From Tubulanus polymorphus (lineage: Eukaryota; Animalia; Nemertea), in the NCBI RefSeq assembly GCF_964204645.1, contig NC_134036.1, forward strand, positions 4,184,600 to 4,248,599: a stretch of 64,000 bases of DNA, given 5' to 3'. Positions within the stretch are counted from its first letter, which is position 1. Each line of letters begins with the position of its first letter. Positions 521-44,446 of the stretch are shown here, piece after piece. The notes beneath the pieces are model-generated. The model searched no databases. It saw only the letters and a list, made by a program, of their open reading frames with translations, and was not told the origin of the DNA. Made by a program: the position numbers and the translations under genes.

Positions 521-1057
521 TCAGTTATCCTTCATGAGTAGTTCGTCCTTCAACAATTTCACCAGCGGATGCTGCCGCTTTTCGCCGAGGAAAAACGGGC
601 GCCGTCCCAAATTCGCGGCGAACGTTTTCGAAGCGTCGGCCCGAAAACGCAGGAACCTGTGCACGAATATCGGGTTCGGGTCCTCGCCGGGGAAGACGAG
701 TTTCTTACCGCCGGCCCACATGCGTTCGATCTCATCGACGACTCCGCCGGGCAGCGGTAGGTAGAACTGCACGATCGTCGGGTCGACGATCCATTCCGAC
801 GAGCCGGCGGTTGTGACCTGTACGATGCTGTGGTCGACGCGCTCGTCCCTGTCGTCGGGATCGACCAGGCGCCAGTAGATCCGATGGCAGTCGTCGAAGC
901 CGTTCTCGTGTAGATGATGCGTCAGATTTAGCGACACGGTTCCGCAGTGGATGTCGAAGCGATGACCGTCGGATTCGTGGCCCTGCGCGCACTGCCGGCG
1001 GAAGAAATCTTCGACGACCGAGATTAGGCGGTCGGGCACGGCTGGAGAGTCGGTCAT
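521..1057 (-). CDS. Intronless 178-aa protein with a putative papain/transglutaminase-like Cys-His-Asp triad
   Basis: ATG-started GC-rich ORF in AT-rich flanks. Motifs HCGTVSLNL (C38), DHSIVQV (H76) and WIVDPTIVQF (D92) have the order and spacing of transglutaminase-fold triads. A possible 5' UTR acceptor (aaacag|atatcaacATG) lies just upstream. Confidence 0.6.
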   Translation of the reverse strand: MTDSPAVPDRLISVVEDFFRRQCAQGHESDGHRFDIHCGTVSLNLTHHLHENGFDDCHRIYWRLVDPDDRDERVDHSIVQVTTAGSSEWIVDPTIVQFYLPLPGGVVDEIERMWAGGKKLVFPGEDPNPIFVHRFLRFRADASKTFAANLGRRPFFLGEKRQHPLVKLLKDELLMKDN

Positions 1058-6351: not shown

Positions 6352-9300
6352 ATGTTGTTTGGTATGGAGCAGCGACTGAGAGCGCTGTTTATATCGTCGC
6401 TGATCGTCTGTCAAGATCGCATCGCACGCGCTGATCGCGCAGACTCTATCGAGGAATCGTCTGTGACGGTAAGTTCGTCTTGTAACAACACGTGGTACCC
6501 CCTAGATTCTACGTCCGGTTACATCGTTTCACCGAATTACCCTTCGTTAACGCGCGGTGTTGAATGTCGTTGGTTCGTCAACAGCTCTTTACCGGGGACT
6601 TTTCAGGCCCGAGTTTACCACGACATCGAGCCATCAATATTTTGCAGTGATAACTACCTTGTCGTCTATCAGTCTGATAACAGATTCTGTGGCAATGGTA
6701 AACACGAAATTCGCCGTAACAATTCGATCCCATTGATGTTTAGAAGTAACGTCGATAGTGCACGAGGAAGTCGGGTTTATATCATATATCGTTATACACG
6801 AAGCCAATTGATTTTAAGTCACGACTGTAACTCCAATTTTTTGGGATTGGGACGATTGCAAACATCGAATGGATACCGATTTGTTTTAGATTTTTTCAAT
6901 CACCAGTGTCAACTATATTTAGAATGGCTCAGACTCCAGGATGGCTTCGCTTTGAATCTGACATTCAGCAACGTTAGCTTCGAATTATATCATATTGTTA
7001 AAACAGCTTCGATTAAGATTCACGACGGTTGGAACACCAGTAGCGAACCTATCGCTCATATACCTGAACAAAAAGGACTAACACCGTCTACGCTTTATAC
7101 TAAAACAAACAAGGCCATCATCGGTCTGCCATCATTCGCATTAAAATTTCACTCAAAATTACATGTGCAGATTTACAAAATATCAGATTGGAACGTATCT
7201 AATCCATTGATTCAGATCTATAATAACGAGTGGGGAGTGCTCATTCCCGATGACAACAGTTTACACATAATAACTCGATCAAAACACTTACACTGCTGGT
7301 CTATCACAGTGCAGGTGTTACAGTACGTCGTCTTCAACTGGCCACGTGATCTCGTCTCGTCCGGTGACGTCATCGGTGTATATAAACTAGAAGGGTTACG
7401 CGTTGTAGGAACTGATATTTTACTCGGTTACAACTACCTGCAATCACTGAGTGTCAAATCTGAAAGCTTTCTCGTCATACTGTGCGTTTTAAGGCCACAA
7501 GAATCAACAAAAAATCATATTGAAATAATCTACAAAATGGAATCGCTTTCGATGACCGATGTTAAGGTTTTTCGGCTACGAGTAAGTATACAATATTTTC
7601 ATATATTATAAATATATTTCAATAATATATATTTCATATATATTTATGTATTTATAAAACAATTATTTCTCCGATATTATTCAAAACACAGATTATGAAT
7701 TCTAAAACTTGGCAACTTTTTCTACAGAATTTGGAGTTTATAAAACCTTTTCGAATGTTCCCAACGAAAAACAAACCGATAGTGACGTATCGCGCAAATA
7801 TATTGAAGCTCACATCGAAATCTAATGTCCATGAATATGGTTTGCGCATGTTGGTTTTATCAGAGAACTGCGAGCGAGCTGGATTTTACATATACGACGG
7901 TGGTAATTTCACGGCTAGACGATACGGTCCGTATTGTCCTCGTTCAACTAGGTACGACCGTAACGTCGTCAGTCTGATTACATCAGGCGGATCAGTAACT
8001 GTACTAGCGTACGCCTACAAATGGGACGGACAGCTGACCGAAGACAGCGAATTGGAACGCCCCTTTCTCAAATTTCAACCGACCGACTGTGTCGGGTACG
8101 TCCTCCAGGAGGGAGAACGGCAGGTCAACATGACGTCACATTGTCTCGTGATTACACCTGAAAATCGACGCCTTCCTTTGAGACATATTTACATATTATC
8201 AAAACACGAATATCAAATTGACCGTTGTTTTACTGGAAAATGGAGGAGATCTTGCAAAAGATTTACAACTTTTAAAAGTCGATTTCTCAATAACAGTCTC
8301 GTATTAAACACGGTTAGGCTTGACAACGAATTCAAGTTCTGGCAATCTCCATTCATAGTTAAAGTACGTCGTAAATGCCAAAGTTTGAAGCGGGCCGATT
8401 CAAGTGGTGCCGGAACGTTTTTACCGGATAAAGATGATTGCGGAATCGTGCAGTCACCGAACTACCCGGGATATGCAGGCTTATTTGCTCAAGCGCTTCG
8501 CTATACATTCGATACTAGATACGTAGGAAGCGCAATTAAATACAGATACTACAGATTCGTTATCAAATATATCGACATAACGCCGTGTTTAAGGATATCT
8601 TTAATGGACAGAGATCCGATCGAGTTTGTTCAACAAATGGACGATTATATCAACGGAAGGCAGATGCACGTCACGCGGAAAATCTGTAAAATTAACCATC
8701 CGTTACTTGGCGGCGTATTTCACAGTTTAATGAATGGTGGCTTCCATTTCGACATAAAAGGCAGAGCCCCGACATTTCAGATACAATACACATTAGAAGC
8801 ATCGTCACCGATCGAAGCGAATCGCTGTCAATCGGGATTCTTTGATTCTGGAATTTCATGCATACGATATATGAGAGGTGAGCGTCTGAATTGGGAGAAT
8901 GCTGAATTGTATTGTAGACAGAAGTACGCGGGACATCTACTCAGTATCAACTCAGAACAGGAAATGGCGGCTATCAAGACGTTATTCGCTACGAAACTTC
9001 TTCGTCATGCTTATTCACAGAAAACCCTCATAATGCTGATTGGATTAAAGCTGCAGGTGACAACCCTAAGTATTGAAGATTAGTAACAAAAAGTTTTGGA
9101 TTTACCATCTGGATAGAATGTTTCTACATAATTTCAGAGAACATGCATTAATGTTTTGTAATACTCTTTTGAATGAATCTCCGAAGACGAATTCAAACGG
9201 CAGTATAACTGCAGATCGTTCGACGTTCATCGTCAATACTGTGTCTTTTTTGCTCTTGAATGCAGCTTTTACTGAAATATGTTTTAATGTATAATGTGTA

Positions 9301-12300
9301 AAAATATATTATGCTTCTGCTTTTCAGCCGAATATAAGCCAATACTTTTGGTCCGATGGAAAACCATTGAGCTATACGGAGTGGTATGAACCTACAAATA
9401 ACGAAACGATACCAGAAGTTATTCGAGGTTTGATATCACCTCTAAGAAAACAACCGATAAATGACGTCAATATGCCGTGCACGGCGATGATACTAGATAA
9501 TCCACGAGGTTCGGCGAACTGGGTTCGATTCCCGTGTCTTATCGAGGAGGTTCATACGACGTTTGTTTGCGAATCGGATAGAAATGAAATAAAGCACGAT
9601 GTTAATATGAATAGATACGAAAATGAAAATAAAGATACCGATGTAAATGATTTATTTCCAAAGCTAGACGACACCAAATTAAGCTGTGTACGGGGAATGG
9701 TAGTTATAGCAGGACGATGTTATCAAATACTGACAAATTGGAACGAAAATCGAAGTTTAGATATTGTAAGCGCGAGAGAAATGTGTCGTGGTATCAGCGG
9801 TGATATAGGTGTGATTCCTTTAACTGTAAATTTCGTAAACTTTTTAGTCACTACGTTTCAATATCAACACCAATATGGCGCCATATTAGTAATGAATGGG
9901 TACGGCAGAGCCATAGTGATACAGCCATTGCTGACCAGGGACTATATCACCTACCATCATTCATTGGTTTGGTCCTTCAAAACCACCGAAAGTGCAGAAC
10001 TTGGTGATGTGCATTCTGTATTATGTTCCTACAATGGAACTGGTGATGACTTGGCTTCTATAAGCGGTTGTAAATCGTGGCAGTTTAAATGTAACGATCA
10101 AAGATGTATCAGTGACCATCGCGTATGTGATACCAGACACGACTGTCAACACGGTGAAGATGAACTCAATTGTACGGATATCAATTTACACAGTCAGTTT
10201 CAATGCGATGATGGTCAGGTGATATCAATGAGTGGATTCTGCGATTTCATACAGGATTGTGTAGATAGTTCTGATGAAGAATCTTGTATTCATCCACCGT
10301 GTTTGTCCGGGCAATTTCGTTGTAGTAACGGTCAATGTGTCGGTAAGACTGGAATTTGTGATGGAGTAACTAATTGTGAAGACGACTCCGATGAAATGGG
10401 ATGCACTGCTGAACTATGTCAGGGCTTCGTGTGTAACAGTGGAGACTGTATCAGTTCTAAGTTGTATCAGGATGGTGTCGTGGATTGCAGTGGGAGCCTT
10501 GAAGAAGATGAGTTAGTAACAACTAGTGTTACAGTGAATCCTACGGTCCAGTGCAATGATGAAAACCACTGTACGACTAACTTCACTAATCTATGCACAG
10601 AAGCTGATGAACAAAGATGTTCTTTTAATTCTCCTCATTGTTATTCAAGACGCCACAGATGTATTCTGGAAAGACTGGTCAATAGTTTCCCAGTTTGTAG
10701 AAATCTTGAGCACGTATTAAGATGTGAAGAATTTGAATGTCCAGCTAGTACCGTAAAATGTCCATCTTCGTACTGTATACCGATCAGACAAGTGTGCGAT
10801 GGTCAATCAGATTGTCCTAATTCAGAAGATGAGTTAAACTGCGAGACATTTTCATGTCCAGGAATGTTTAAATGTGGTCAGGAAAGTCGTTGTATTCCAC
10901 AATCTGAAGTTTGTGATGGTGTTGTTAATTGTAAAAATACAACTGATGACGAGGCTTTCTGTAACGTCACGTGTCCTAGTCGTTGTCAATGTCAAGGTCA
11001 TTCAGTAGACTGTAGGAATGTTGGTTTTATAGATATTACTGGTCTCATCACGATATCAACTCGAATCCTAATTTTGTCCAATAACAGCCTTCTTTTTAAT
11101 GCGTCAACATTTTCTCCTTTCGTCTATCTTCGCATGCTCAACCTTTCCTCAAATAAATTGTCTCAAATTCTACCAAATTCATTCACAAACCTGCATAATC
11201 TACGAACGTTAGACCTTACGTATAACTCGATTACATCCTTTTCAACTAATGCATTCAACGGTTTGTATAGATTAAAAGAGCTTTTCATAACTGGAAATCC
11301 AATTCGATATTTAGAAGATGGTAGCTTTAATGGTTTAATCTCGCTTTCCAGTTTAGACCTTCACGGACTGTACATTGCAATACTTACCGCTAATGTATTC
11401 AAAGGTTTATCCTCAATGACTTCATTGAATATCAGCAGCAATAGAATTGATTTCATATCGGAATATGCCTTTTCTGGTTTACGCGAACTATTGCATCTTG
11501 ATTTATCTAACAATTCCAAATACATTTCCACAGAAATAGGCGTTTTCGACAATCTGACATCATTAGTCTCGCTAACGTCTGATGCTTACAAATTTTGCTG
11601 CATGGCTCCGAATGTTGACCAGTGCCTTCCTGAAGCCGATCCGTTTTCCTCCTGTTCTGACTTGATGGGTAACACAGTTCTCAGAGCTATCATCTGGGTC
11701 ATCGCCGCGTTCAGTTTCTCCGCGAACAGTATCGTCATTTTACTTCGCATTCAACTACCATCATCCGAAACGCGTAACACATCTTCCGACATCCTCATCA
11801 CAAATCTCGCAGCCTGCGATTTCATGATGTCGATTTATTTGTTCTTGATCGCCGGTGCCGATAACGTTTACAAAGGAGTCTATTTTCTAAATTCAGAAAT
11901 TTGGACCGACAGTTCGTTGTGTCGTTTTGCCGGGGTTTTAGTTACTATCTCTTGTGAAGGATCTTTGACATTCTTGCTTCTCCTCACGCGTCATCGATAC
12001 TCGAACATCGTCGACCCATTTTCCGATAGTGTGATGATCACTCCTAAACACCTCACCAGTATTTGCTGCCTTTGCTGGATCATTTTGAGTATAGTTTCTT
12101 TGTTACCGTTGTCACAATCGCCGTACTTCGGTACGAAGTTCTACGGCACTACCGGAGTTTGTTTGCCTATGAATTTACTTTCGATCGACGTCAAAGCCTG
12201 GCATTATTCATTGGCTATTTTTGCTGCGTCGAACTCGGTCGTACTTGCTACAATAATGTGTACTTATGCCCAAATGTACAGATTCGTATCTGGAAGCAGA

Positions 12301-12579
12301 TCCGGTTCTGGTAGAGCTGATCCTACCGAACTGGTTTTGGCACGCAGGAGTTTGGTGATAAATCTTTGTAATTTATTTTGTTGGCTGCCGTTAATCACCG
12401 TTCAGTTTTGCGCGGTACTCCGCGTGGACATACCGAATCAGGTGGCGGCTTGGCTGGCGGTTCTTTTTTTACCGATCAACTCGTCCCTCAATCCTATTCT
12501 TTACACCATACTGACGATTGATATAAAATCCGTACGAGCAAAGAACAAACGCCTCCGCAGACAGAGAAGAATTCTCTAA
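6352..12579 (+). CDS. GRL101-like LGR GPCR copy 1 (CUB-CTLD-LDLa-LRR-7TM), ~1936 aa; exons 6352-7581, 7728-9056, 9328-12579
   Basis: Phase-0 GT-AG introns (cga|gtaagt...tctacag|aat; cag|gtgaca...ttttcag|ccg) join three ORFs in frame and rebuild the CTLD (LIGLKLQ-PNISQYFWSDG..SYTEW). CUB motifs SGYIVSPNYP and CGIVQSPNYP; LDLa CD...DC..GEDE; LRRNT CPSRCQC; LRRs; hinge CC..C.P..D.FSSC; 7TM with NPILY. Confidence 0.93.
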
Positions 12580-13844
12580 AATGAATTTTTACCGACAAAC
12601 ATCATTAAACTGTTCAATGCACATTCATATCTCATGTAATGACACATTTTAGTGGTCTACCTTTCTCAGTGCTGTTTTAAAATTAAATCGTGTTAGCTCC
12701 CATGATCAAGTGTACCGGTCATTAGCCATACGATCAATGTGAATGCTTCAGTCTTGATTCCTTGATCTCTTGATAACTATACATTTTCCCTATGCAGGTC
12801 ATATATATCTTAGATCAGCTTACGCATCGAGCATTTTGAGTCCCTGTTGTAGAAGACGTAATTATCAACACACAAGACAGATACCGGTACCACTTTTTAT
12901 CAGTGTTTTCATTAGCACACAGTAGATACTACTTTTATTATATATGGTTCGTAGAGATTAGATCATATCTTGACTGAAATACAAAAAGCACTGGTTTGCA
13001 CGCACCGTTCTCGAGACGAGATATCGTATTCTACGTTTACGTGTAATTTATAGAAGATAGTGTCACTTTGACAAATTTGGTCAGTGCCAAACTACTGAAT
13101 ACTAATACAGATCTTGATACGGGTCCAACCAGCTTTGTCGATGGAAAAGCTAGCCGAACAATCTCGGCATAGCGTCGACAACATTCGTGCCGGTTGATAT
13201 TGCGCACTAATTATACGTTGTACAAATGGAAGGTCCCCAATTGATGTTGCATCCAGGTCAGGGCCTCTTTATATATAGAAAGTAATCCTGATTGATTGAA
13301 AATGAATTCACGTATAGCGCACGGGCACCGGGCATTCTAAATAAGACTGGAAAAGAAGTGCACGATATGCAGTACACGATGTTGGAGTATCTCACAACCT
13401 CATATAACCTGATAGACGTTGTATTAAAGAAATAAAAACAAATCACCGAAAGTCTTTGTGTTGCGTTTGTTAAATGACCTCTGAGTTGTAGTGGTTCGAG
13501 GAAGGTCTTCTCACAATAGATTATGTTGATATTGCTACCAAGAACGACCCAAGAAAACCTGACGAGAAAATAAAATTGCATAGCTCTGGTCACGAGAGGT
13601 AACTGGGTTCTTCCACGAGATATTCTACGGATCTTAAGCATGGGATTTGAAATTTAAGATAATATTATACGCAAAATGGATATCTGCCAGTGCGTGCTGC
13701 TTTTCATTCAATTTCTTTATTCTCTTAACCTGTCAGTATCTTTCTACGGAGTCGAGAAGATACATAATATCCGTGGTAAGATTGAAAAATCCCACAATAA
13801 TTCAGTCAAAGATGTAAAGTTCTTGAATAGGAGAGTATAATATA

Positions 13845-13893
13845 TTTTGTTCAACGTTTCGGCTAAATACTGTTAGCCGTCATGAAGACAAAA
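13845..13893 (-). ncRNA. Degenerate Penelope-type hammerhead-like relic
   Basis: Minus strand reads attttgt-cttCATGA-cggctaacagtatttagcc-GAAACGTT-gaacaaaat. Stems I and II pair, but the CUGAUGA core is mutated. Confidence 0.4.
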
Positions 13894-15453
13894 TATCCCA
13901 TGCATGAAAGCCTATCGCATTGAAATATTCGTAGATAGTTAGTAGTCTCCGTAGTGGATAGGCTGCACTAGGTGAAATGGTTGCCTTCACCCAGGTTAGA
14001 TATGTTCTTCGCTGTACTTTGCTGATATTCCCGCGTATTGTATTTTACTGATAACGATTGCGTCTGAATACAATTAATAAGCGGGCATAATAAACATCGA
14101 AACCTACGTTTTAGAATGGAAACGAGATAGAATTCGAATGCCGCTAGTAGTAACCAGAATGCCTCTCCCGCAATGGAAATTCAGTGGCAAAGTCAAGAAA
14201 GACTTTCGCAGTTTTATATCTGTGTTTTTTAAGGAGGGTTTACTTTACATTTTAATTACTATTTGAAATTGGCGTTCGCATTTTTAACGTTACCCTAAAG
14301 GGCTTAATCAGAATTAAAACGGGAGCCCGAATTATTCTTACTGAGAGATGGAATGAAACAGGTCTTCTTCCTGATTAACTGTTTTTTTAAATTTCTTTCG
14401 TTTGCAGCAGCTTTAAAAGTCATCCTCTTGATACAAGTATAGATTCGTAAAATGGGGTATCAGAACTGTTGTACTGTGCAGAGGAACGACATTTTAAAAC
14501 GCATATGAATCGGACAACATGACGGTTAGGACACATTTGGTTTTGGGACACAAAAAGACGTGCTTGATTTCTATAAACAGGTAGGGTTTTTTGTGCGTAA
14601 AACTTTGTGTAAAATCTAGAATTTGAGCCTTCGGGGACGGATCCGGGGCAGACTTTGACAGGAGTACAAACAATCGTAAAACGCATATGTACTATAAAGG
14701 GCAAGTTAAGGATCCACGCAGCCAAAACAAGGTTCTGGGCAATTTTGAAAAATCATACGATTCCTTTGAAGAATCTGTGGCCAGGGGTTGTGTTGGCGTG
14801 AGCTACGGCTGGCGGCAATCGAACCCCGGCAGGCAAGGATGTCACCAACGCAACGCAAGTGTCGAAGTAGCCGTTCTGAAAATGTGCGTAATCGTTGCGT
14901 TTCCAGCGCACTATTACTTTTTATCGATGTTGTCGAGCGGTATCGATTTTAAGGAAAATATTTCGCGTCTCATCAGAGGTAACTTGCACTTACAAATATC
15001 TGATTCTTACATCTACTTTCTCTCAAGTATGCGCATTATACTAGTATTCCGTACAGATACCTCGCGCGGTATTCGAAAGACGTGTATCCTAGCGGGCATG
15101 TTTTCATGAAAGATGAATAAATATCCAGAAAACCTGAACGAAGCGAAAATAACTTGAGTATTTTTTAAGATGATAATTGGACATATATTTTTACGCCATG
15201 CGCGGAAACATAAAACTAGAAATCGTTGCACAGATAGATGGTAATTACTGTGAAGTTGATCTAAGCCTATGCGCACGCTAATGACAGAATGGATAAAATA
15301 TTTACGAAATTGCTGGATTCTGATTTGAGCAAATAATTCATTTCACTAGTAGGGAGTTTACAATTCTACATCATTTACAGACAGAAGTTGAAGATCTGTG
15401 GACAACCAAGCAGAGTTTGGATCGTGGAAGTGTTTGCTCGTTGTATCGTGTTG

Positions 15454-18400
15454 ATGTTGTTCGGTATGGAGCAGCGACTGAGAGCGCTGTTTATATCGTC
15501 GCTGATCGTCTGTCGAGTTCGCATCGCGCGCGCTGATCGCGCAGACTCTATCGAGGAATCGTCTGTGACGGTAAGTTCGTCTTGTAACAACACGTGGTAC
15601 CCGTTAGATTCTACGTCCGGTTACATCGTTTCACCGAATTATCCTTCGTTAACGCGCGGTGTTGAATGTCGTTGGTTCGTCAACAGCTCTTTATCGGGGA
15701 CTTTTCAGGCCCGAGTTTACCATGACATCGAGCCGTCCATATTCTGTAGTGATAACTACCTTCTCGTCTATGAGTCTGTTAACAGATTCTGTGGCGATGG
15801 TAAACATGAAATTCGACGTAACAATTCGATCTCGTTGATGTTTAGAAGTAACGTCGATAGTGCACGAGGAAGTCGGGTTTATATCATATACACATATCGT
15901 TATACACGAAGCCAATTGATTTTAAGTCACGACTGTAAATCCACTACTTTTAGATTGGGACGATTGCAAACATCGAAGGGATACCGATTTATTTTAGAGT
16001 TTTCCAATCACCAGTGTCGACTATATTTAGAATGGCTCAGACTCCAGGATGGCTTCGCTTTGAACCTGACATTCAGCGACGTTAGCTTCGAATTGTTTCC
16101 TATTGTTAAAATAGTTTCGATTAAAATTCACGACGGTTGGAACACTAGTAGCGAACCTATAGCTCATATACCTGAACAAAAAGGACTACCACCATCTACG
16201 TTTTATACTAAAACAAACAAGGCCATCGTCGGTATGCCACCATTCGAATTCAAATTTCACTCAAAATTACTTGTGCAGATTTACAAAATATCAGATTGGA
16301 ACCTAACTAATCCATTGATTCAGATCTATAATAACGAGTCGGGAGTGCTCATTCCCGATGACAACAGTTTACACGTTGTAACTCGATCAAAACACTTACA
16401 CTGCTGGTCTATCACAGTGCAGGTGTTACAGTACGTCGTCTTCAACTGGACACGTAACCTCGTCTCGTTCGGTGACATCATCGGTGTATACAAACTAGAA
16501 GGGTTACGCGTTGTAGGAACTGATATTTTACTCGGTTACAACTACCTGCAATCACTGAGTGTCAAATCTGAAGGCTTTCTCGTCATACTGTGCGTTTTAA
16601 GGCCACAAGAATCAACAAAAAATCATATTGAAATAATCTACAAAATGGAATCGCTTTCGATGACCGATGTTAAGGTTTTTTGGCTACGAGTAAGTATACA
16701 ATATCATTTACATAAAACACTATTCCTCGAAAATACTATAAAACGCACAATTTAGAATTCGAAAACTTTTTCTACAGAATATGGTGTTTATTAATCCTTT
16801 TCGGCTGTTCCCAATGAAGAACAATCCGGTAAGGACGTTTCGCACAAATATATTGCCGATAGTGACGTATCGCGCAAATATATTGAAGCTCACATCGAAA
16901 TCTAATGTCCATGAATATGGTTTACGCATGTTGGTTATATCAGAGAACTGCGAGCGAGCTGGATTTTATATATACGACGGTGGTAATTTCACGGCTAGAC
17001 GATACGGTCCGTATTGTCCTCGTTCAACTAGGTACGACCGTAACGTCGTCAGTCTGATTACATCAAGCGGATCGGTTACTGTACTAGCATACGCCCACAA
17101 ATGGGAAGGACAGTTGACCGAAGATAACGAATTGCATCGCCCCTTTCTCAGATTTCAACCAACCGACTGTGACGGGTATGTCCTCCAGGATGGAGAACGG
17201 CAGGTCAACATGACGTCACATTGTCTCGTGATTACACCTGAAAATCGACGCCTTCCTGTGGGACATATTAACATATTATCAGAGCACGAATATCAAATTG
17301 ACCGATGTTCTACTGGAATATGGAGGAGCTCTTCGTGCAAAATATCTACAACTGTAAAAAGCCAATTTCTCAATAACAGTCTCGTATTAAATACGGTTAG
17401 TCTTAGCAGCGAAAACATCTTCTGGCAATTTCCATTTATAGTGAAAGTGCGTCATAAATGCCAAAGTTTGAAGCGGGCCGATTCAAGTAGTGGGCATATC
17501 GGTATGTTTTTACCGGATAAAGATGATTGCGGAATCGTGCAGTCACCGAACTACCCGGGTAAAGCAGGCTTATTTGCTCAATCACTTCGCTATACATACA
17601 ATACTAGATACGTAGGAAGCGCAATTAAATACAGATACTACAGATTCGTAATCAAATATATCGACATAACGCCGTGTTCAAGGTTATCTATAATGGACAA
17701 AAATCCGATCGAGTTTGTTCAACAAATGGACGATTATATCAACGGAAGGCAGATGCACGTCACGCGGAAAATCTGTAAAATTAACCATCCGTTACTTGGC
17801 GGCGTATTTCACAGTTTAATTAATGGTGGCTTCCATTTCGACATAAAAGGCAGAGCCCCGACATTTCAGATACAATACACATTAGAAGCATCGTCACAGA
17901 TCGAAGCGAATCGCTGTCAATCGGGATTCTTTGATACTGGAATTTCATGCATACGATATATGAGAGGTGAGCGTCTGAATTGGGAGAATGCTGAATTGTA
18001 TTGTAGACAGAAGTACGCGGGACATCTACTCAGTATCAACTCAGAACAGGAAATGGCGGCTATCAAGACGTTATTCGCTACGAAACTTCTTCGTCATGCT
18101 TATTCACAGAAAACCCTCATAATGCTGATTGGATTAAAGCTGCAGGTGACAACCCTAAGTATTGAAGATTAGTAACAAAAAGTTTTGGATTTAGCATCTG
18201 GATAGAATGTTTCTACATAATTTCAGAGAACATGCATTAATGTTTTGTAATACTCTTTTGAATGAATCTCCGAAGACGAATTCAAACGGCAGTATAACTG
18301 CAGATCGTTCGACGTTCATCGTCAATATTGTGTCTTTTTTGCTCTTGAATGTAGCTTTTACTGAAATATGTTTTAATGTATAATGTGTAAAAATATATTA

Positions 18401-21400
18401 TGCTTCTGCTTTTCAGCCGAATATAAGCCAATACTTTTGGTCCGATGGAAAACCATTGAGCTACACGGAGTGGTATAAACCTACAAATAACGAAACGATA
18501 CCAGAAGTTATTCGAGGTTTGATATCTCCTCTAAGAAAACAACCGATGAATGACGTCAATATGCCGTGCACGGCGATGATACTGGATAATCCACGAGGTT
18601 CGGCGAACTGGGTTCGATTCCCATGTCTTATCGAGGAGGTTCATACGACGTTTGTTTGCGAATCGGATAGAAATGAAATAAAGCACGATGTTAATATGAA
18701 TAGATACGAAAATGAAAATAAAGATACCGATGTAAATGATTTATTTCCAAAGCTAGACGACACCAAATTAAGCTGTGTACGGGGAATGGTACTTATAGCA
18801 GGACGATGTTATCAAATACTGACAAATTGGAATAAAAACCAAAGTTTAGATATTGGAAGCGCGAGAGAAATGTGCCGTGGTATCAGCGGTGATATAGGTG
18901 AGATTCCTTTAACTGTAAATTTCGTAAACTTTTTAGTCACTACGTTTCACTATCAACACCAATATGGCGCCATATTAGTAATGAATGGGTACGGCAGAGC
19001 CATAGTGATACAGCCATTTGTGACCAGGGACTATATCACCTACCATAATTCATTGGTTTGGTCCTTCGAAACCCCCGAAAGTGCAGAACTTGGTGATGTG
19101 CATTCTGTATTGTGTTCCTACAATGGAACTGGTGATGACTTGGCTTCTATAAGCGGTTGTAAATCGTGGCAGTTTAAATGTAACGATCAAAGATGTATCA
19201 GCGACCATCGCGTATGTGATACCAGACACGACTGTCAACACGGTGAAGATGAACTCGATTGTACGGATATCAATTTACACAGTCAGTTTCAATGCGAAGA
19301 TGGTCAGGTGATATCAATAAGTGGATTCTGCGATTTCATACAGGATTGTGTAGATAGTTCCGATGAAGAATCTTGTATTCATCCACCGTGTTTGTCCGGG
19401 CAATTTCGCTGTAGCAACGGTCAATGTGTCGGTAAGACTGGAATTTGTGATGGAGTCACTAATTGTGAAGACGACTCCGATGAAATGGGATGCACTGTTG
19501 AACTATGTCAGGGCTTCCTGTGTAACAGTGGGGACTGTATCAGTTCTGAGTTGTATCAGGATGGTGTCGTGGATTGCAGTGGAAGCCTTGAAGAAGATGA
19601 ATTAGTAACAACTAGTGTTACAGTGAATCCTACGGTCCAGTGCAATGATGAAAACCACTGTACGACTAACTTCACTAATCTATGCACAGAAGCTGATGAA
19701 CAAAGATGTTCTTTTGATTCTCTTCATTGTTATTCTAGACGTTACAGATGTATTTTGGAAAGATTGATAAATAGTTTCCCAGTTTGTAGAAATCTTGAGC
19801 ACGTATTGAGATGTGAAGAATTTGAGTGTCCAGTTAGTACTGTAAAATGTCCAGCATCGTACTGTATACCGATCAGACAAGTGTGCGATGGTCAACCAGA
19901 TTGTCCTAATTCAGAAGATGAGTTAAACTGCGAGACATTTTCATGTCCAGGAATGTTTAAATGTGGTCAGGAAAATCGATGTATTCCACGATCTGAAGTT
20001 TGTGATGGTGTTGTTAATTGTAAAAATACAACTGATGACGAGGCTTTCTGTAACGTCACGTGTCCTAGTCATTGTAAATGTCAAGGCCATTCAGTAGACT
20101 GTAGGAATATTGGTTTTACAGATATTACTGGTCTAATCACGATATCAAGTCGGGTCATAATGTTGTCCAATAACAGCCTTCTTTTTAATGCGTCAACATT
20201 TTCTCCTTTCGTCTATCTTCGCATGCTCAACCTCTCCTCAAATAAATTGTCTCAAATTCGACCAAATTCGTTCACAAACCTGCATAATCTACGAACTTTA
20301 GACCTTTCGTTTAACTCGATTACATCTTTATCAACTAATGCATTTAACGGTTTGTATAGCTTAAAAGAGCTTTTCATAACTGGAAATTCAATTCGATATT
20401 TAGAAGATGGTAGCTTTAATGGTTTAATATCACTTCCTATTTTTGACCTTCACGGACTGTACATTGCAATACTTGCCGGAAATGTATTCAAAGGTCTATC
20501 CTCATTGACTTCATTGAATATCAGCAGCAATAGAATTAATTTCATATCGGAATATGCTTTTTCTGGTTTACGCAAACTTTTGTATCTGGATCTATCCAAT
20601 AATTCGAATTACATTTCGACAGAAAAAGGTGTTTTTGACAATCTGACATCATTAGTCTCACTAACGTCTGATGCTTACAAATTTTGCTGCATGGCTCCGA
20701 ATGTTGACCAGTGCCTTCCTGAAGCCGATCAGTTTTCCTCCTGTTCTGACTTGATGGGTAACACAGTTCTCAGAGCTATCATCTGGGTCATCGCCGCGTT
20801 CAGTTTCTCCGCGAACAGTATCGTAATTTTACTTCGCATTCAACTACCATCATCCGAAACGCGTAACACATCTTCAGACATCATCATCACAAATCTCGCA
20901 GTCTGCGATTTCATGATGTCGATTTATTTGTTCTTGATCGCTGGTGCCGATAACGTTTACAAAGGAGTCTATTTTCTAAATGCTGAAATTTGGACCGACA
21001 GTTCGTTGTGTCATTTTGCCGGGGTTTTAGTTACTATCTCCTGTGAAGGATCTTTGACATTCTTGCTTCTCCTCACGCGTCATCGATACTCGAACATCGT
21101 CGACCCATTTTCCGATAGTGTGATGATCACTCCTAAACACCTCACCAGTATTTGTTGCCTTTGCTGGATTATTTTGAGCATCATTTCTTTGCTGCCGCTG
21201 TCGCAATCGCCGTACTTCGGTACGAAGTTCTACGGCACTACCGGAGTTTGTTTGCCTATGAATTTACTTACAATCGACGTCAAAGCCTGGCATTATTCAT
21301 TGGCCATTTTCGCTGCGTCCAACTCGGTCGTACTTGCTACAATAATGGGAACTTATGCCCAAATGTACCGATTCGTATCTGGAAGCAGGTCCGGTTCTGG

Positions 21401-21659
21401 TAGAGCTGATCCTACCGAACTGGTTTTGGCACGTAGGAGTTTGGTGATAAATCTTTGTAATTTATTTTGTTGGCTGCCGTTAATTACCGTTCAGTTTTGC
21501 GCGGTACTCCGCGTGGACATACCGAATCAGGTGGCGGCTTGGCTGGCGGTTCTTTTTTTACCGATCAACTCGTCCCTCAATCCTATTCTTTACACCATAC
21601 TTACAATTGATATAAAATCCGTACGCGCAAAGAACAAACGCTTCCGCAGACAGAGGTGA
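15454..21659 (+). CDS. GRL101-like LGR GPCR copy 2, ~1948 aa; exons 15454-16689, 16778-18145, 18417-21659
   Basis: Same splice sites and phases as copy 1; open frame throughout; high identity to copy 1. Confidence 0.93.
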
Positions 21660-22853
21660 ATTTACTAAACTCGATTTCCACCGACAAACATAATTGAACT
21701 GTTCAATACACATTCATATCTGATGTTATGACGAATATTAGTGGTTCACCTTTCGCAGTGCGGTTTCAAATCAAATGTCAATAGCTCCGATAATTGGGAC
21801 TGCCATTGGCCACACGATCATTGTGAATGCTATAAAGTCTTACCTCCTTGATCTCTTGATAACTATACATTTTTCCCTTTGCAGGAAAGTCATATATATT
21901 TTTGACCAGCTTACACATTGAGCATTTTCAGTCCCGGTTGTAGAAGACGTAATTATTAACACACAACACAGATACCGGTACCACTTGTATCAGTGTTTTC
22001 ATAAGCACACAGTACATACCACTTTTATTATATATAGTTCGTAGAAAATAGATCATATCTTAATGACTGAAAGAAAAAAGCACTGGTTTGCACGCACCGT
22101 TCTCGAGACGAGATATCGTATTCTACGTTTATGTGTTATTTATAGAAGATAGTGTTTTTGGTCAGTGCCAAACTACTGAATACTAATACAGATCTTAATA
22201 CGGGTCCAACCAGCTTTGACGATGGAAAAGCTAGCCGAAAAATCTCGGCATAGCGTCGACAACATTCGTGCTGGTTTATTTTTAACTAGATATTGCGCAC
22301 TGATTATATGTTGTACGAATGGAAGGTCCCCTGTTGATGTTGCATCCAGGTCAGGGACTAAGCACCTCTTAATAGAAAATAATCCTGATTGATTGAAAAG
22401 GAATTCACGTATAGCGCACGGGCACCGGGCATTCTAAAGACTGAGACTGGATAAGAAGTGCACGGTATGCAGTACACGATGTTGTTCTATCTCACTACAT
22501 CATATAACGTGATAGACGTTGTTTTAGAGAAATAAAAACAAATCACCGAAAGTTTTTGTGTTGCGTTTGTTAAATGACCTCTGAGTTGTAGTAGTTCGAG
22601 GAAGGTCTTCTAACAATAGTAGATGTTAATATTGCTACCAAGAACGACCCGACAAAACCTGACGAGAAAATATAATTGCATAATTGTCACAGGAAGTGAC
22701 TGGGTTCTTCACGAGATATTCTGTAGATCTAAAGTATGGGATTTGAACAACCTAGGATGATATTATACGTGAAATGGATATATGCCAGTGCGTAAATGAA
22801 GAAATCCCACACTTCGAATTTAGAATTATACTATCAAAATTATTATTATGAAA

Positions 22854-22895
22854 CCGCAACGTTTCGGCTGTTGACTAATAGACATCATCAGGTGG
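22854..22895 (-). ncRNA. Minimal type I hammerhead ribozyme motif (Penelope-type)
   Basis: CCAC-CUGAUGA-u-stemII-GAAACGUU-GCGG with palindromic AACGUU; mismatches in stems I and II. Confidence 0.6.
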
Positions 22896-22999
22896 AATGA
22901 AGTGCAAGATATGCAGTATACGATGTTGCACTCTCACTACATCATATAACCTGAAGGGCGTTGTTTTAGAGAAATAAAAACAAATCACCGAAAGTCATT

Positions 23000-23041
23000 C
23001 CACCTGATGATGGCTGTTAGTCAACAGCCGAAACCTTGTGG
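23000..23041 (+). ncRNA. Minimal type I hammerhead ribozyme motif (Penelope-type)
   Basis: CCAC-CUGAUGA-u-GGCUGUU(aguc)AACAGCC-GAAAC-CUU-GUGG; perfect stems I and II, but G-to-C at the cleavage triplet. Confidence 0.6.
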
Positions 23042-24023
23042 TTTCATAATAATAATTTTGATAATATAATTCTAAATTCGAAGTGTGGGATTTCACGGAT
23101 TATAGTGTTTATTCGACAACAAATGCCAGTGTGTGTTGTTTTTCTTTCAATGTCTTTATTCTCTAAACCTGTGCGTATCATTCCACCTGAGTCGAGATGA
23201 TACACAATATTCCCGGTAAGAGTACAAACAATCGTAAAACGCATATGTACTGCAAAGGGCAAGTTAAGGATCCACGCAGCCAAAACAAGGTTCTGGAAAA
23301 TTTTGAAATTTCATCGCACTTTCATACGATTCCTATGAAGGATCTGTGGCCAGGGGTTGTGTTGGCGTGAGATTCGGCTGGCGGCAATCAAACCCTGGCA
23401 GGCGAGGATGTCACCAACGCAAGGCTAAGCGTCGAAGTAGCCGTTCTGAAAATGTACGTAGTCGTTGCGTTGCCAGCGCACTATTACTTTTTATCGATGT
23501 TGTCGAGCGGTATCGATTTTAGGGAAAATATTTCGCGTCTCATCAGAGATAACTTGCTCTTACAAATATCTGAATCTTAAATCTACTTTCTCTCGAGTAA
23601 GTGCGAATTATACTAGTATTCGGTACAGATACCTCGCGCGGAATTCGAAAGACGTATATCCTAGCGGGCATGTTTTCATGAAAGATGAATAAATATCCAG
23701 AAAACCTGAACGAAGCGAAAAAACCTTGAGTATTTTTAAGATGATAATTGGACATACATTTTACGCTATGTGCGGAAACATAAAACTAGAAATCGTTGCA
23801 CAGATAGATGGTAATTACTGTGAAGTTGATCTAAGCCTATGCGCACGCTAATGACAGAATGGATAAAATATTTACGTAATTGCTGGATTCTGATTTTAGC
23901 AAATAATTCATTTCACTAGCAGGGAGTGTACAATTCTACATCATTTACAGACAGAAGTTGAAGATCTGTGGACAACCAAGCAGTGTTCGGATCGTGGAAG
24001 TGTTCGCTCGTTGTGTCGTGTTG

Positions 24024-27000
24024 ATGTTGTTCGGTATGGAGCAGCGACTGAGAGCGCTGTTTATATCGTCGCTGATCGTCTGTCGAGTTCGCATCGCGCG
24101 CGCTGATCGCGCAGACTCTATCGAGGAATCGTCTGTGACGGTAAGTTCGTCTTGTAACAACACGTGGTACCCGTTAGATTCTACGTCCGGTTACATCGTT
24201 TCACCGAATTACCCTTCGTTAACGCGCGGTGTCGAATGTCGTTGGTTCGTCAACAGCTCTTTACCGGGGACTTTTCAGGCCCGAGTTTACCACGACATCG
24301 AACCATCAATATTCTGTAGTGATAACTACCTTCTCGTCTATGAGTCTGATAACAGATTCTGTGGCGACGGTAAACATGAAATTCGACGTAACAATTCGAT
24401 ATCGTTGATGTTTAAAAGTAACGTCGATAGTGCACGAGGAAGTCGGGTTTATATCATATATCGTTATACACGAAGCCAATTGACTTTAAGTCACGACTGT
24501 AAATCCACTTTTTTTAGATTAGGACGATTGCAAACATCGAATGGATACCGATTTATTTTAGATTTTTTCAAACACCAGTGTCAACTATATTTAGAATGGC
24601 TCAGACTCCAGGATGGCTTCGCTTTGAACCTGACATTCAGCGACGTTAGCTTCGAATTATATCCTATTGTTAAAATAGTTTCGATTAAAATTCACGACGG
24701 TTGGAACACTAGTAGCGAACCTATCGCTCATATACCTGAACAAAAAGGACTACCACCATCTACGTTTTATACTAAAACAAACAAGGCCATCGTCGGTATG
24801 CCACCATTCGTATTCACGTTTCACTCGAAATTACATGTACAGATTTACAAAATATCAGATTGGAACCTAACTAATCCATTGATTCAGATCTATAATAACG
24901 AGTCGGGAGTGCTCATTCCCGATGACAACAGTTTACACGTTGTAACTCGATCAAAACACTTACACTGCTGGTCTATCACAGTGCAGGTGTTACAGTACGT
25001 CGTCTTCAACTGGACACGTAACCTCGTCTCGTTCGGTGACATCATCGGTGTATACAAACTAGAAGGGTTACGCGTTGTAGGAACTGATATTTTACTCGGT
25101 TACAACTACCTGCAATCACTGAGTGTTAAATCTGAAGGCTTTCTCGTCATACTGTGCGTTTTAAGGCCACAAAAATCAACAAAATCTCGTATAGGAATTA
25201 ACTATAAAATGGAATCGCTTTCGATGACCGATGTTAAGGTTTTTTGGCTACGAGTAAGTATACAATATCATTTACATAAAACACTATTCCTCGAAAATAC
25301 TATAAAATGCACAATTTAGAATTCGAAAACTTTTTCTACAGAATATGGTGTATATTAATCCTTTTCGGCTGTTCCCAATGAAGAACAATCCGATAAGGAC
25401 GTTTCGCACAAATATATTGCCGATAGTGACGTATCGCGCAAATATATTGAAGCTCACATCGAAATCTAATGTCCATGAATATGGTTTACGCATGTTGGTT
25501 ATATCAGAGAACTGCGAGCGAGCTGGATTTTATATATACGACGGTGGTAATTTCACGGCTAGACGATACGGTCCGTATTGTCCTCGTTCAACTAGGTACG
25601 ACCATAACGTCGTCAGTCTGATTACATCAGGTCGATCGGTTACTGTACTAGCATACGCCCACAAATGGGAAGGACAGTTGACCGAAGATTACGAATTGCA
25701 TCGCCCCTTTCTCAGATTTCAACCAACCGACTGTGACGGGTATGTCCTCCAGGATGGAGAACGGCAGGTCAACATGACGTCACATTGTCTCGTGATTACA
25801 CCTGAAAATCGACGCCTTCCTGTGGGACATATTAACATATTATCAGAGCACGAATATCAAATTGACCGATGTTCTACTGGAATATGGAGGAGCTCTTCGT
25901 GCAAAATATCTACAACTGTAAAAAGCCAATTTCTCAATAACAGTCTCGTATTAAATACGGTTAGTCTTGACAGCGAAAACAAGTTCTGGCAATTTCCATT
26001 CATACTTAAAGTGCGTCATAAATGCCAAAGTTTGAAGCGGGCCGATTCCAGTAGTATCGGTATGTTTTTACCGGATAAAGATGATTGCGGAATCGTGCAG
26101 TCACCGAACTACCCGGGTAATGCAGGCTTATTTGCTCAATCGATTCGCTATACATTCAGTACTAGATTCGTAGGGAGCGCAATTAAATACAGATACTACA
26201 GATTCGTAATCAAATATACTGACGTAACGCCGTGTTCTAAAGCATCTTCAGCGGACAAAGATCCGATCGAGTTTGTTCAACAAATGTACGATTATATCAA
26301 CGGAAGGCAGATGCACGTCACGCGGAAAATCTGTGGAATTCACCATTCTTTACTCGGCGGCGTATTTCACAGTTTAATGAACGGTGGCTTTTATTTTGAC
26401 ATAAAAGGCAGAGCCCCGACATTTCAAATACAATACGTATTAGAAGCATCGTCACAGATCGAAGCGAATCGCTGTCAATCGGGATTCTTTGATTCGGGAA
26501 TTTCATGCATACGATATATGAGAGGTGAGCGTCTGAATTGGGAGAATGCTGAATTGTATTGTAGACAGAAGTACGCGGGACATCTACTCAGTATCAACTC
26601 ACAACAGGAAATGGCGGCTATCAAGACGTTATTCGCTACGAAACTTCTTCGTCATGCATATTCACAGAAAACCCTCATAATGCTGATTGGATTAAAGCTG
26701 CAGGTGACAACCCTAAGTATTGAAGATTAATAACAAAAAGAGTTGGATTTACCATTTGGGTAGAATGTTTCTACATAATTTCAGAGAACATGCATAATAG
26801 TTTTGAAATACTCTTTTGAAAGAATCGCCGAAGACGAATTCAAACGGCAGTATAACTGCAGATCGTTCGTCGTTCATCGTCAATATTGTGTCTTTTTTGC
26901 TTTTGAATGCAGCTTTTACTGAAATATGTTTTAATACGTATAACTTGGAAAAATATATTATACTTCTGCTTTTCAGCCGAAATTAAGCCATTACTTTTGG

Positions 27001-30000
27001 TCCGATGGAAAACCATTGAGCTACACGGAGTGGTATAAACCTACAAATAACGAAACGATACCAGAAGTTATTCGAGGCTTGATATCTCCTCTAAGAAAAC
27101 AACCGATGAATGACGTAAATATGCCGTGTACGGCGATGATGCTGGATAATCCACGAGGTTCGGCGAACTGGGTTCGATTCCCATGTCTTATCGAGGAGGT
27201 TCATACGACGTTTGCTTGCGAATCGGATAGAAATAAAATAAAGTCCGATGTTAATATGACTAGATACGAAAATGAAAATAAAGATACCGATGTAAATGAT
27301 TTATTTCCAAAGCTAGACGACACCAAATTAAGCTGTGTACGGGGAATGGTACTTATAGCAGGACGATGTTATCAAATACTGACAAATTGGAACGAAAACC
27401 GAAGTTTAGATATTGGAAGCGCGAGAGAAATGTGCCGTGGTATCAGCGGTGATATAGGTGAGATTCCTGTAAATGTAAATTTCGTAAACCTTTTAGTCAC
27501 TACATTTGACTATCAACACCAATATGGCGCCATATTAGTAATGAATGGGTACGGCAGAGCCATAGTGATACAGCCATTTGTGACCAGGGACTATATCACC
27601 TACCATCATTCATTGGTTTGGTCCTTCGAAACCACCGAAAGTGCAGAACTTGGTGATGTGCATTCTGTATTATGTTCCTACAATGGAAGTGGTGATGAAT
27701 TGGCTTCTATAAGCGGTTGTAAATCGTGGCAGTTTAAATGTAACGATCAAAGATGTATCAGCGACCATCGCGTATGTGATACCAGACACGACTGTCAACA
27801 CGGTGAAGATGAACTAAATTGTGCGGATATCAATTTGCACAGCCAGTTTCAATGCGATGATGGTCAGGTGATATCAATAAGTGGATTCTGCGATTTCATA
27901 CAGGATTGTGTGGATAGTTCTGATGAAGAATCTTGTATTCATCCACCGTGTTTGTCCGGGCAATTTCGCTGTAGCAACGGTCAATGTGTCGGTAAGACTG
28001 GAATTTGTGATGGAGTCACTAATTGTAAAGACGACTCCGATGAAATGGGATGCACTGTTGAACTATGTCAGGGCTTCCTGTGTAACAGTGGAGACTGTAT
28101 CAGTTCTGAGTTGTATCAGGATGGTATCGATGGCAGTGGGAGCCTTGAAGAAGATGAGTTAGTAACAACTAGTGTTACAGTGAATCCTATGGTCCAGTGC
28201 AATGATGAAAACCACTGTACGACTAACTTCATTAATCTATGCACAGAATCTGATGAACAAAGATGTTCTTTTAATTCTCCTCATTGTTATTCAAGACGCC
28301 ACAGATGTATTCTGGAAAGATTGATAAATAGTTTCCCAGTTTGTAGAAATCTTGAGCACGTATTAAGATGTGAAGAATTTGAGTGTCCAGCTAGTACTGT
28401 AAAATGTCCATCATCTTATTGTATACCGATCAGACAGGTGTGCGATGGTCAGTCAGATTGTCCTAATTCAGAAGATGAACAAAACTGCGAGACATTTTCA
28501 TGTCCAGGAATGTTTAAATGTGGTCAGGAAAGTCGATGTATTCCACAATCTGAAGTTTGTGACGGTGTTGTTAATTGTAAAAACACAACTGATGACGAGG
28601 CTTTCTGTAACGTCACGTGTCCTAGTCATTGTCAATGTCAAGGTCATTCAGTAGACGGTAGGAATGTTGGATTTATAGATATTACTGGTGTCATCACGAT
28701 TTCAACTCGAGTCCTAATTTTGTCCAATAACAGCCTTCTTTTTAATGCGTCAACATTTTCTTCTTTCGTCTATCTTCGCATGCTCAACCTTTCCTCAAAT
28801 AAATTGTTTCAAATTCTACCAAATTCATTCACAAACCTGCATAATCTACGAACGTTAGACCTTACGTATAACTCGATTACATCTATATCAACTAATACAT
28901 TCAACGGGTTGATTAGTTTGAAAGAACTTTTCATAACTGGAAATCCAATTCGATATTTAGAAGATGGTAGCTTTAATGGTTTAATCTCGCTTTCCAGTTT
29001 AGACCTTCACGGACTGTACATTTCAATACTTGCTGCTAATGTATTCAAAGGTCTATCCTCAGTGATTTCAATGAATATCAGCAGCAATAGAATTAATTTC
29101 ATATCGGAGTATGCCTTTTCTGGTTTACGCGAACTTTTGCATCTTGATTTATCTAACAATTCCAATTACATTTCCACAGAAATAGGCGTTTTCGACAATC
29201 TGACATCATTAGTCTCGCTAACGTCTGATGCTTACAAATTTTGCTGCATGGCTCCGAATGTTGACCAGTGCCTTCCTGAAGCCGATCAATTTTCCTCCTG
29301 TTCTGATTTGATCGGTAACACAGTTCTCAGAGCTATCATCTGGGTCATCGCCGCGTTCAGTTTCTCCGCGAACAGTATGGTCATTTTACTTCGCATTCAA
29401 CTGCCATCATCCGAAACGCGTTACACATCTTCTGACATCCTCATCACAAATCTCGCAGTCTGCGATTTCATGATGTCGATCTATTTGTTTTTGATCGCCG
29501 GTGCCGATAACATTTACAAAGGAGTCTATTTTCTAAATGCTGAAATCTGGACGGACAGTTCAATGTGTCGTTTTGCTGGGATTTTAGTTACCATCTCTTG
29601 TGAAGGATCTTTGACATTCTTGCTTCTCCTAACGCGTCATCGATACTCGAACATCGTCGATCCATTTTCCGATAGTGTGATGATCACTCCTAAACACCTC
29701 ACCAGTATTTGCTGTCTTTGCTGGATCATTTTGAGCATCATTTCTTTGTTACCGCTGTCACAATCGCCGTACTTCGGTACGAAGTTCTACGGCACTACCG
29801 GAGTTTGTTTGCCTATGAATTTACTTACAATCGACGTTAAAGCCTGGCATTATTCATTGGTCATTTTTGCTGCATCGAACTCGGTCGTACTTGCTACAAT
29901 AATGGGTACTTATGCCCAAATGTACAGATTCGTTTCTGGAAGCAGGTCCGGTTCTGGTAGAGCTGATCCTACCGAACTGGTTTTGGCACGTAGGAGTTTG

Positions 30001-30216
30001 GTGATAAATCTTTGTAATTTATTTTGCTGGCTGCCATTAATTACCGTTCAGTTTTGCGCGGTACTCCGCGTTGACATTCCGAATCAGGTGGCGGCTTGGC
30101 TGGCAGTTCTTTTCTTACCGATCAACTCGTCCCTCAATCCTGTTCTTTACACCATACTGACGATTGATATAAAATCCGTACGAGCAAAGAACAAACGCTT
30201 CCGCAGACAGAGGTGA
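24024..30216 (+). CDS. GRL101-like LGR GPCR copy 3, ~1943 aa; exons 24024-25253, 25342-26703, 26977-30216
   Basis: Same exon structure and open frame; two conserved cysteines are lost (LDLa4 and LRRNT). Confidence 0.9.
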
Positions 30217-43892: not shown

Positions 43893-44446
43893 GTTATAGT
43901 TACTATCGACTAGCCCCGGTCTCTAGCTTAGGCCTTGAGCTTAAGTAAATAGATTCATCGCTTAATTGTGGCCGTAAGTTCGAAGTTACCACCGGTCTAG
44001 AAACAACCTGTTTAATGGGCTTAATTGAATCGATGAATAACTGGCTGATCCTAGATGGATTCAGCGTAGGTAGACGCCCTAAGTCTCAACTGTGCTCCTT
44101 TATACCGAAATATACTCGATGTGTAATTATGTAATTCTTTTTTTTTTTCTAGGAAGAAAAGAAAAAGAAAAGAAAGAGAAATTTTTTTAGAATTACCCCT
44201 ATTGAAGACGTAAATAATCCATCATCCGAAAAACCGCGCGAGTTTGTAGGATTGCCTCCCCCCGGAGAACAACGAGACGACATGAAACGCGGAAAGGCTG
44301 ACCAGCCGAGATCGATTGCGCGATTGTTTCGCGTTCGATCGTAATTGGCGGCGTTTCGAGAGCGGCCATCTTGTTTCGTAGATAATTTCGTGAGCCTTCA
44401 TACAACGACGAATTGTCGGGGTCGCGACCTGATCATCGGGGTCGCG

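Follow-up and report, generated by a model that had tools for sequence, protein, structure and literature searches.

Tandem three-exon genes of Tubulanus polymorphus predict a large family of GRL101-type receptors with a CUB- and lectin-like N-terminal extension

Introduction

GRL101, or type C2, G protein-coupled receptors of the leucine-rich repeat-containing kind (LGRs) combine multiple LDLa modules with leucine-rich repeats (LRRs) and a seven-transmembrane (7TM) domain (PMC4079206; bioRxiv 10.1101/2021.04.15.440029), and PMC4837482 describes the LDLa module of RXFP1 as required for activation. Genes of the GRL101 type occur in tandem groups in molluscs: apple snails (Ampullariidae) carry 29-132 tandem GRL101 genes that are expressed in tentacles and palps (PMC6573481), and the schistosome-resistance locus SudRes2 of Biomphalaria sudanica holds a cluster of 12 GRL101-like genes with a lectin-LDL-LRR layout (PMC12297450). 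GRL101-like genes are also expressed in the sensory tentacles of starfish (PMC6267866) and in the tentacles of tritons (PMC13403566), and the literature searched yielded no paper connecting GRL101 with nemerteans. Here we analyse such genes in the ribbon worm Tubulanus polymorphus, in a stretch of 64,000 nucleotides (contig NC_134036.1, positions 4,184,600 to 4,248,599 of the forward strand; hereafter the window). Three tandem units on the + strand (6352-12579, 15454-21659 and 24024-30216) would each encode one chain with a signal peptide, one CUB domain followed by about five divergent CUB-like modules, a lectin-like domain split by an intron, a weak second lectin-like module, 5-7 LDLa modules, seven LRRs with a cysteine-rich hinge and a 7TM domain. 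By its domain layout and its match to RXFP1 this chain is predicted to be a type-I-oriented mosaic G protein-coupled receptor (GPCR) of the GRL101/type-C LGR kind.

Gene structure of the tandem units

Between 6.3 and 30.2 kb a triplet of open reading frames (ORFs) of ~450, ~460 and ~1,067 amino acids (aa) is repeated three times on the + strand. A first-pass annotation, made from the letters of the window, had read the three ORFs of a unit as exons of one gene with phase-0 introns and a product of ~1,940 aa, and the present models bear this out: both introns are in phase 0 with GT..AG ends in all three units, the nine exons are stop-free and have lengths that are multiples of three, and the predicted products of units 1, 2 and 3 have 1,936, 1,948 and 1,943 aa. 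In unit 1 the ATG at 6352 follows an in-frame stop, exon 1 ends as ...CTA CGA/GTAAGT at 7581, exon 2 ends as ...CTG CAG/GTGACA at 9056 and exon 3 opens at 9328 after TTTTCAG, and the third unit closes with its stop at 30216. Each junction motif has one occurrence per unit. The acceptor of intron 1 in unit 1 is ambiguous, exon 2 starting either at 7692 or at 7728, and the 7728-type acceptor is the only one present in units 2 and 3. Units 1 and 2 share 98.9% identity in intron 2.

A sample of 21 paralogous loci, taken from the genomic matches to exon 2, repeats this organization throughout, the three exons being arranged as in the window and showing 52-88% identity. In every one of these loci both introns open with GT at the homologous codon, and the acceptors read as pyrimidine-rich (C/T)AG at intron 1 in 21 of 21 and at intron 2 in 20 of 21. 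Intron lengths range over 76-726 and 81-912 nt with no bias towards multiples of three. Fully open models of 1,907-1,955 aa were obtained at 17 of the 21 loci, the others having one stop, two exon 3 frameshifts and one unclear acceptor. As far as residue 951, the predicted protein PAA57333.1 of the flatworm Macrostomum lignano (P0130, 2,163 aa) can be aligned to the exon 2 profile (hhalign 97.9%; the homologous part is exon 2 residues 176-443), while its residues 980-1265 align with the exon 3 profile from the very start of the exon (hhalign 99.6%). Since this protein is colinear over the exon 2/3 junction, both halves of the lectin-like domain lie side by side in one chain in another phylum. 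As judged from these splice signals and frames, each unit is very probably one three-exon gene.

The same loci bear on the idea that the array is mostly non-functional duplicated DNA, or that each unit's three ORFs belong to different genes, which we hold to be highly improbable. A stop, frameshift or unclear acceptor in 3-4 of the 21 paralogues and a public annotation without full-length models are what decay or separate genes would lead one to expect, but reading frames as long as 1,070 aa have stayed open in each of the three units and in the 17 intact paralogues, ORFs 2 and 3 begin inside domains with AG acceptors as their only in-frame entries, and splice sites are kept at 52-78% protein identity. 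The flatworm homologue is moreover a single chain, and the ratio of nonsynonymous to synonymous substitution rates (dN/dS) of the 7TM domain is about 0.1.

Three of the sampled loci are probably pseudogenes: L006 (G000:C10:2158117-2166117) has a single in-frame stop in exon 3, and L010 (G000:C8:2781289-2789289) and L011 (G000:C12:4787934-4795934) each have an exon 3 frameshift, L010 also being without a start ATG. Intron loss was considered for a fourth locus, L001 (G000:C9), where a frame of 1,607 aa runs over exons 2 and 3, and was rejected, as that frame spans an 81-nt intron (L001:6357-6437) that is itself in frame and stop-free. For the same reason L001 provides no evidence for splicing; retention of this intron would add 27 residues within the lectin-like domain.

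The LDLa-LRR-7TM core

All homology searches were run exon by exon, and not on the joined protein. Exon 3 contains five stretches matching Pfam Ldl_recept_a in each window copy (six in L001), and two further degenerate cysteine-rich LDLa modules can be read by inspection. Of the seven LDLa modules claimed earlier, five are therefore clear, whereas the remaining two are degenerate and are read by eye. Four Pfam stretches of LRR_8 follow in exon 3, where seven LxxLxLxxN repeats and a CC...C...C hinge are readable in residues 575-780, before the first transmembrane helix, and the 7TM domain matches Pfam 7tm_1 with an E-value of 1e-22. Against the PDB, the best match of the LRR and 7TM part is RXFP1 (PDB identifier 7tmw, E-value 3.6e-70), followed by LGR4, LHCGR, FSHR and TSHR. 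R3.50, CWLP and NPxxY show no variation among 21 copies. The proposed GRL101/type-C LGR core thus holds, with several LDLa modules, LRRs with a hinge and a 7TM domain nearest to RXFP1.

This affinity raises the prospect that the genes encode hormone receptors like the single-copy GRL101 orthologue, binding an insulin/insulin-like growth factor (IGF)-like peptide through LRRs and LDLa modules. An IGF-receptor hypothesis has been put forward for GRL101 (bioRxiv 10.1101/2021.04.15.440029), and both the nearness of the 7TM domain and LRRs to RXFP1 and the multiple-LDLa layout, as in GRL101 and type C2 LGRs (PMC4079206), agree with it. A conserved hormone axis would, however, hardly need about 283 copies with divergent ectodomains, where ambulacrarians have one GRL101 (bioRxiv 10.1101/2021.04.15.440029), and classical GRL101 lacks the ~1,090 aa of extra ectodomain found here, so that we regard a hormone receptor as very unlikely.

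Lectin-like domains

Exon 2 ends with the opening part, ~60 residues, of a C-type lectin-like domain (Pfam Lectin_C positions 2-36; PDB lectin chains residues 2-60), and the start of exon 3 carries a W-x-D-G...Y-x-x-W segment that matches residues 84-104 of carbohydrate-recognition domain 4 (CRD4) of the mannose receptor. Because the two exon ends match complementary parts of the domain, splicing would complete lectin-like domain 1, in agreement with the first-pass annotation. Two such domains had been claimed, and while the first is recovered in both its halves, the second is a weak match, discussed below.

Sugar-binding C-type lectins carry EPN/QPD and WND motifs. In the 21 copies examined the lectin-like domain has K/E-P-T and W-V-R at these positions, W-V-R being invariant; the EPN position was taken from the mannose-receptor CRD4 alignment, with a small register ambiguity, and the WND position was assigned by inspection. 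Ca-dependent glycan binding by this domain is unlikely because both motifs are replaced, and the glycan recognition proposed earlier accordingly finds no support in these positions. The loop NPRGSANWVRFPC (window 9490-9540, exon 3 residues 55-71) is invariant in 21 copies, and its flatworm counterpart in the Macrostomum protein, around residue 1040, is NPRHHSNWIKVPC. As the loop is invariant in the family and still recognizable in a flatworm, its sequence suggests a conserved partner or a structural role and not variable recognition. The loop sits at the WND position of sugar-binding lectins and is present in 283 genomic places. Special nucleotide-level conservation of the stretch coding for RGSANWVRFPC was also considered, and was rejected, with a codon identity of 0.73-0.85 that is not above that of other conserved parts.

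These features count against an innate-immune or non-self repertoire, in which surface molecules of pathogenic, parasitic or allogeneic origin would be ligands of the ectodomains, with signalling via the 7TM domain, a reading that we consider rather unlikely. The lectin-like domain is without Ca- and sugar-binding motifs, and an invariant loop kept into a flatworm is the opposite of a diversifying recognition surface.

N-terminal CUB and CUB-like modules

The first module of exon 1 is a CUB domain, scoring 23.6 bits against a Pfam cut-off of 21.4, and its paralogue profile matches the CUB domains of cubilin and MASP with an E-value of 2.7e-12. These two families are also the best PDB matches of the profile, which would sit well with an immune role. 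CUB and lectin-like modules are frequent in complement-type recognition proteins.

For modules 2-6 there is no Pfam match, CUB significance being reached by module 1 alone, and hhalign comparison among six ectodomain segments gave no significant internal-repeat pair. A small CUB profile aligns over its full length, if weakly, with three of the five modules (hhalign E-values 0.005-0.08), language-model (Atlas) feature matches place the CUB-like modules with CUB clusters at 0.92-0.93, and by eye the cysteine spacing and the C-x-W-x-I, Y-D-G and SPNYP motifs of this part fit CUB. About 500 aa are not demonstrably CUB (exon 1 residues 151-410 and exon 2 residues 1-358). A search of exon 2 against 1.84 billion representative proteins gave matches to the lectin half and three distant Macrostomum-type matches only. 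The earlier count of several CUB domains thus stands for the first module, by Pfam and by the paralogue profile, and not for the other five, which do not reach significance. The large ectodomain claimed to precede the GRL101 core, at ~1,000 aa, is in fact slightly longer, with ~1,090 aa before the LDLa modules.

Family size and evolution of the copies

A degenerate DNA pattern for RGSANWVRFPC, of 33 places, has 283 matches in the genome against none for the reversed control, and the matches lie mostly in arrays with a period of 8-13 kb on contigs C3-C6, C8-C12 and C22. Among 369 genomic candidates for exon 2, at least 95 were scored as intact copies. From these matches we estimate that the family has about 283 copies in the T. 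polymorphus genome. The tandem array described earlier is thus present in the window with its three units, but its scale had been missed. Five more copies lie on the same strand with ~8 kb spacing 20-53 kb upstream of the window (G000:C12:4131666-4165750), at 58-60% exon 2 identity to the window copies; these five distinct copies and the three in the window make a local array of at least eight genes in two subclades. The public protein LOC141911221 (P0001, 689 aa) covers one exon 3 with ~125 residues skipped (G000:C9:2808485-2810878) and part of it matches contig C9 at 99%. The public genome annotation probably under-calls the family.

Exon DNA identity among the window copies is 90-96%, and which two copies are most alike changes along the gene, units 2 and 3 being 99-100% identical at 7728-8294 and units 1 and 2 being 99-100% identical at 8739-9336. 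Such mosaic identity points to gene conversion or unequal crossover, and these sequence patterns indicate that the window units are young tandem duplicates still exchanging sequence. The suggestion that the family is locally expanding is supported by the tandem units, this mosaic identity and the number of genomic copies.

The modules differ in how fast they change. The 7TM domain is under strong purifying selection, with a dN/dS of 0.07-0.12 among the window copies, and the LDLa modules (0.14-0.21) and CUB1 (0.10-0.14) have similarly low values. The middle CUB-like modules are the fastest evolving part of the gene; ratios of 0.35-1.5 in CUB-like modules 2-6 and lectin-like module 2 suggest that ectodomain modules may be under diversifying selection, and fast evolution of the middle ectodomain would also suit immune recognition. 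Across 24 copies, synonymous divergence itself varies threefold by module, from ~0.4 in CUB1, CUB-like module 3 and the C-terminal half of the lectin-like domain to ~1.3 in CUB-like modules 2 and 6, which fits module-wise gene conversion or differences in mutation rate.

Function of the receptor family

We regard the identity of the genes and the receptor mechanism, in outline, as likely. The large ectodomain would bind an extracellular macromolecular ligand, plausibly a protein rather than a sugar held by Ca; the LDLa, LRR and hinge region would relay binding to the 7TM domain, as in RXFP1; and the family as a whole would form a diversified sensor repertoire. What is sensed can be proposed by analogy. 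Environmental or chemical sensing is a possibility that we favour tentatively, and the GRL101-like genes of snails and starfish would make it somewhat likelier than immune or non-self recognition. The immune reading can in turn point to the Biomphalaria tandem cluster of lectin-LDL-LRR-7TM genes, which is linked to schistosome resistance by a genome-wide association study, although the associated variants fall in a neighbouring non-GRL101 gene (PMC12297450).

Taking the sensory reading further, one may speculate that the ribbon worm relies chiefly on the ~280 receptors to sense macromolecular cues from prey, mates, microbes or non-self, with specificity set by the fast-evolving CUB-like modules and second lectin-like module and read out through the LDLa/LRR relay; this extension is doubtful. 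If true, it would describe a large-ectodomain receptor class distinct from the small-ligand GPCR chemoreceptors of other animals.

Several observations weigh against a family of intact, diversifying mosaic receptors as set out here. The gene model is predicted from genomic DNA and cross-species comparison; LOC141911221 is the only public family protein found in T. polymorphus and is shortened; the full chain is without public annotation in this species, and a collection of 15 billion proteins held no protein with exon 2. Modules 2-6 are CUB-like candidates and unproven as CUB domains, and the second lectin-like module, whose matches have E-values of 0.3-0.7, is likewise a candidate. AlphaFold models, which had been proposed as a check of the CUB count, were run on exons 1 and 2, the predicted local distance difference test (pLDDT) score being too low to judge that count both for exon 1 alone (32.7) and for exon 2 with 24 paralogues (37.6); Foldseek hits of the low-confidence exon 2 model, with the MAp19 and MASP2 CUB domains on top (E-value 3e-3), are hints only. 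At the D/E3.49 position all 21 copies have Thr, so that the third transmembrane helix (TM3) reads T-R-H/Q. Finally, across 24 copies dN/dS is below 1 in every domain (0.14-0.43; linker 0.66).

Conserved and variable ectodomain modules are clearly partitioned in the receptor family proposed here, which makes it a good system in which to ask which modules set specificity.

Features of the window

Coordinates of the predicted features are collected in Table 1. The window holds no further family copy beyond 30.2 kb. Nine neighbouring ORFs of 150-290 aa, including those at 521-1256 (- strand), 44345-44878, 49212-49682 and 54522-56045, have no Pfam match, and a search for Rfam families at gathering score over window positions 12580-64000 found none.

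Table 1. Predicted features of the three tandem units, in window positions
Feature	Position	Strand	Remarks
Unit 1 exon 1	6352-7581	+	410 aa; ATG, GTAAGT donor
Unit 1 signal peptide	~6352-6432	+	hydrophobic N-terminus
Unit 1 CUB1	~6481-6801	+	Pfam CUB, paralogue profile
Unit 1 two CUB-like candidate modules	6802-7581	+	language-model leads, weak hhalign
Unit 1 intron 1	7582-7727	+	146 nt, phase 0; GTAAGT donor, polypyrimidine-CAG acceptor homologous to units 2 and 3
Unit 1 alternative intron 1	7582-7691	+	second AG
Unit 1 exon 2	7728-9056	+	443 aa, open frame
Unit 1 three CUB-like candidate modules	7728-8801	+	exon 2
Unit 1 lectin-like domain 1, N-terminal half	8802-9056	+	Lectin_C, PDB lectin chains
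Unit 1 intron 2	9057-9327	+	271 nt, phase 0; within lectin-like domain 1; CAG/GTGACA donor, TTTTCAG/ acceptor
Unit 1 exon 3	9328-12579	+	1,083 aa and stop
Unit 1 lectin-like domain 1, C-terminal half	9328-9576	+	mannose-receptor CRD4 match
Unit 1 variable linker	9577-9675	+	exon 3
Unit 1 second lectin-like module, weak	9676-10047	+	exon 3
Unit 1 LDLa region	10048-10965	+	Pfam Ldl_recept_a
Unit 1 LRRNT, 7 LRRs and Cys-rich hinge	10966-11652	+	LRR_8, reading by eye
Unit 1 7TM and tail	11653-12576	+	Pfam 7tm_1, RXFP1 match
Unit 2 exon 1	15454-16689	+	open, GT donor; DNA identity to unit 1 94%
Unit 2 exon 2	16778-18145	+	AG acceptor, GT donor, open
Unit 2 exon 3 with stop	18417-21659	+	open; Pfam LDLa, LRR, 7tm_1
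Unit 3 exon 1	24024-25253	+	open, GT donor
Unit 3 exon 2	25342-26703	+	AG acceptor, GT donor, open
Unit 3 exon 3 with stop	26977-30216	+	open; Pfam LDLa, LRR, 7tm_1

Comparison with known systems

The exact architecture had been thought possibly novel, and this does not hold, for the order CUB...lectin-LDLa-LRR-7tm_1 of the nemertean chain recurs in Macrostomum PAA57333.1 and in two predicted proteins of Amphiura filiformis (P0070 and P0071; 2,492 and 2,813 aa), which contain three CUB domains followed in order by lectin, LDLa, LRR and 7tm_1. These proteins are uncharacterised. Homology to the Macrostomum protein runs from CUB-like module 6, takes in both lectin-like modules and extends into the first LDLa module, including the NPR..NW[VI][RK].PC loop, whereas the Amphiura proteins differ in having extra kringle, F5/8C and EGF modules; in neither species do the predicted proteins have detectable homology to exon 1.

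Among the described receptors, GRL101 of Lymnaea stagnalis, a type C2 LGR, is alike in having several LDLa modules followed by LRRs and a rhodopsin-type 7TM domain of the LGR clade. The nemertean chain adds ~1,090 aa of CUB, CUB-like and lectin-like modules before the LDLa modules, has 5-7 of the latter where GRL101 has 12, and occurs in about 283 copies as opposed to one or a few. Among solved structures RXFP1 matches the LRRs, hinge and 7TM domain best, and it also has LDLa N-terminal to its LRRs, but it differs in having a single LDLa module, no CUB or lectin module and an ERY-type TM3 motif in place of the nemertean T-R-H/Q.

The SudRes2 cluster of Biomphalaria is alike in consisting of tandem GPCRs with a C-type lectin-like domain, an LDL repeat, LRRs and a 7TM domain in one chain, and it shows structural variation between haplotypes (PMC12297450). 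It belongs to a mollusc, has 12 genes and has no CUB domain described, whereas the nemertean family is ~20-fold larger and has a CUB-like N-terminus. The apple-snail expansion is likewise a massive, lineage-specific tandem expansion of the GRL101 type in another phylum. GRL101-type expansions thus recur in invertebrates, in the sensing organs of snails, at a schistosome-resistance locus and in the sensory tentacles of starfish. Both the architecture and such expansions are already known in other invertebrates, and what is new in T. polymorphus is the scale of the family, which, at about 280 copies, most of them intact, would exceed every other case found.

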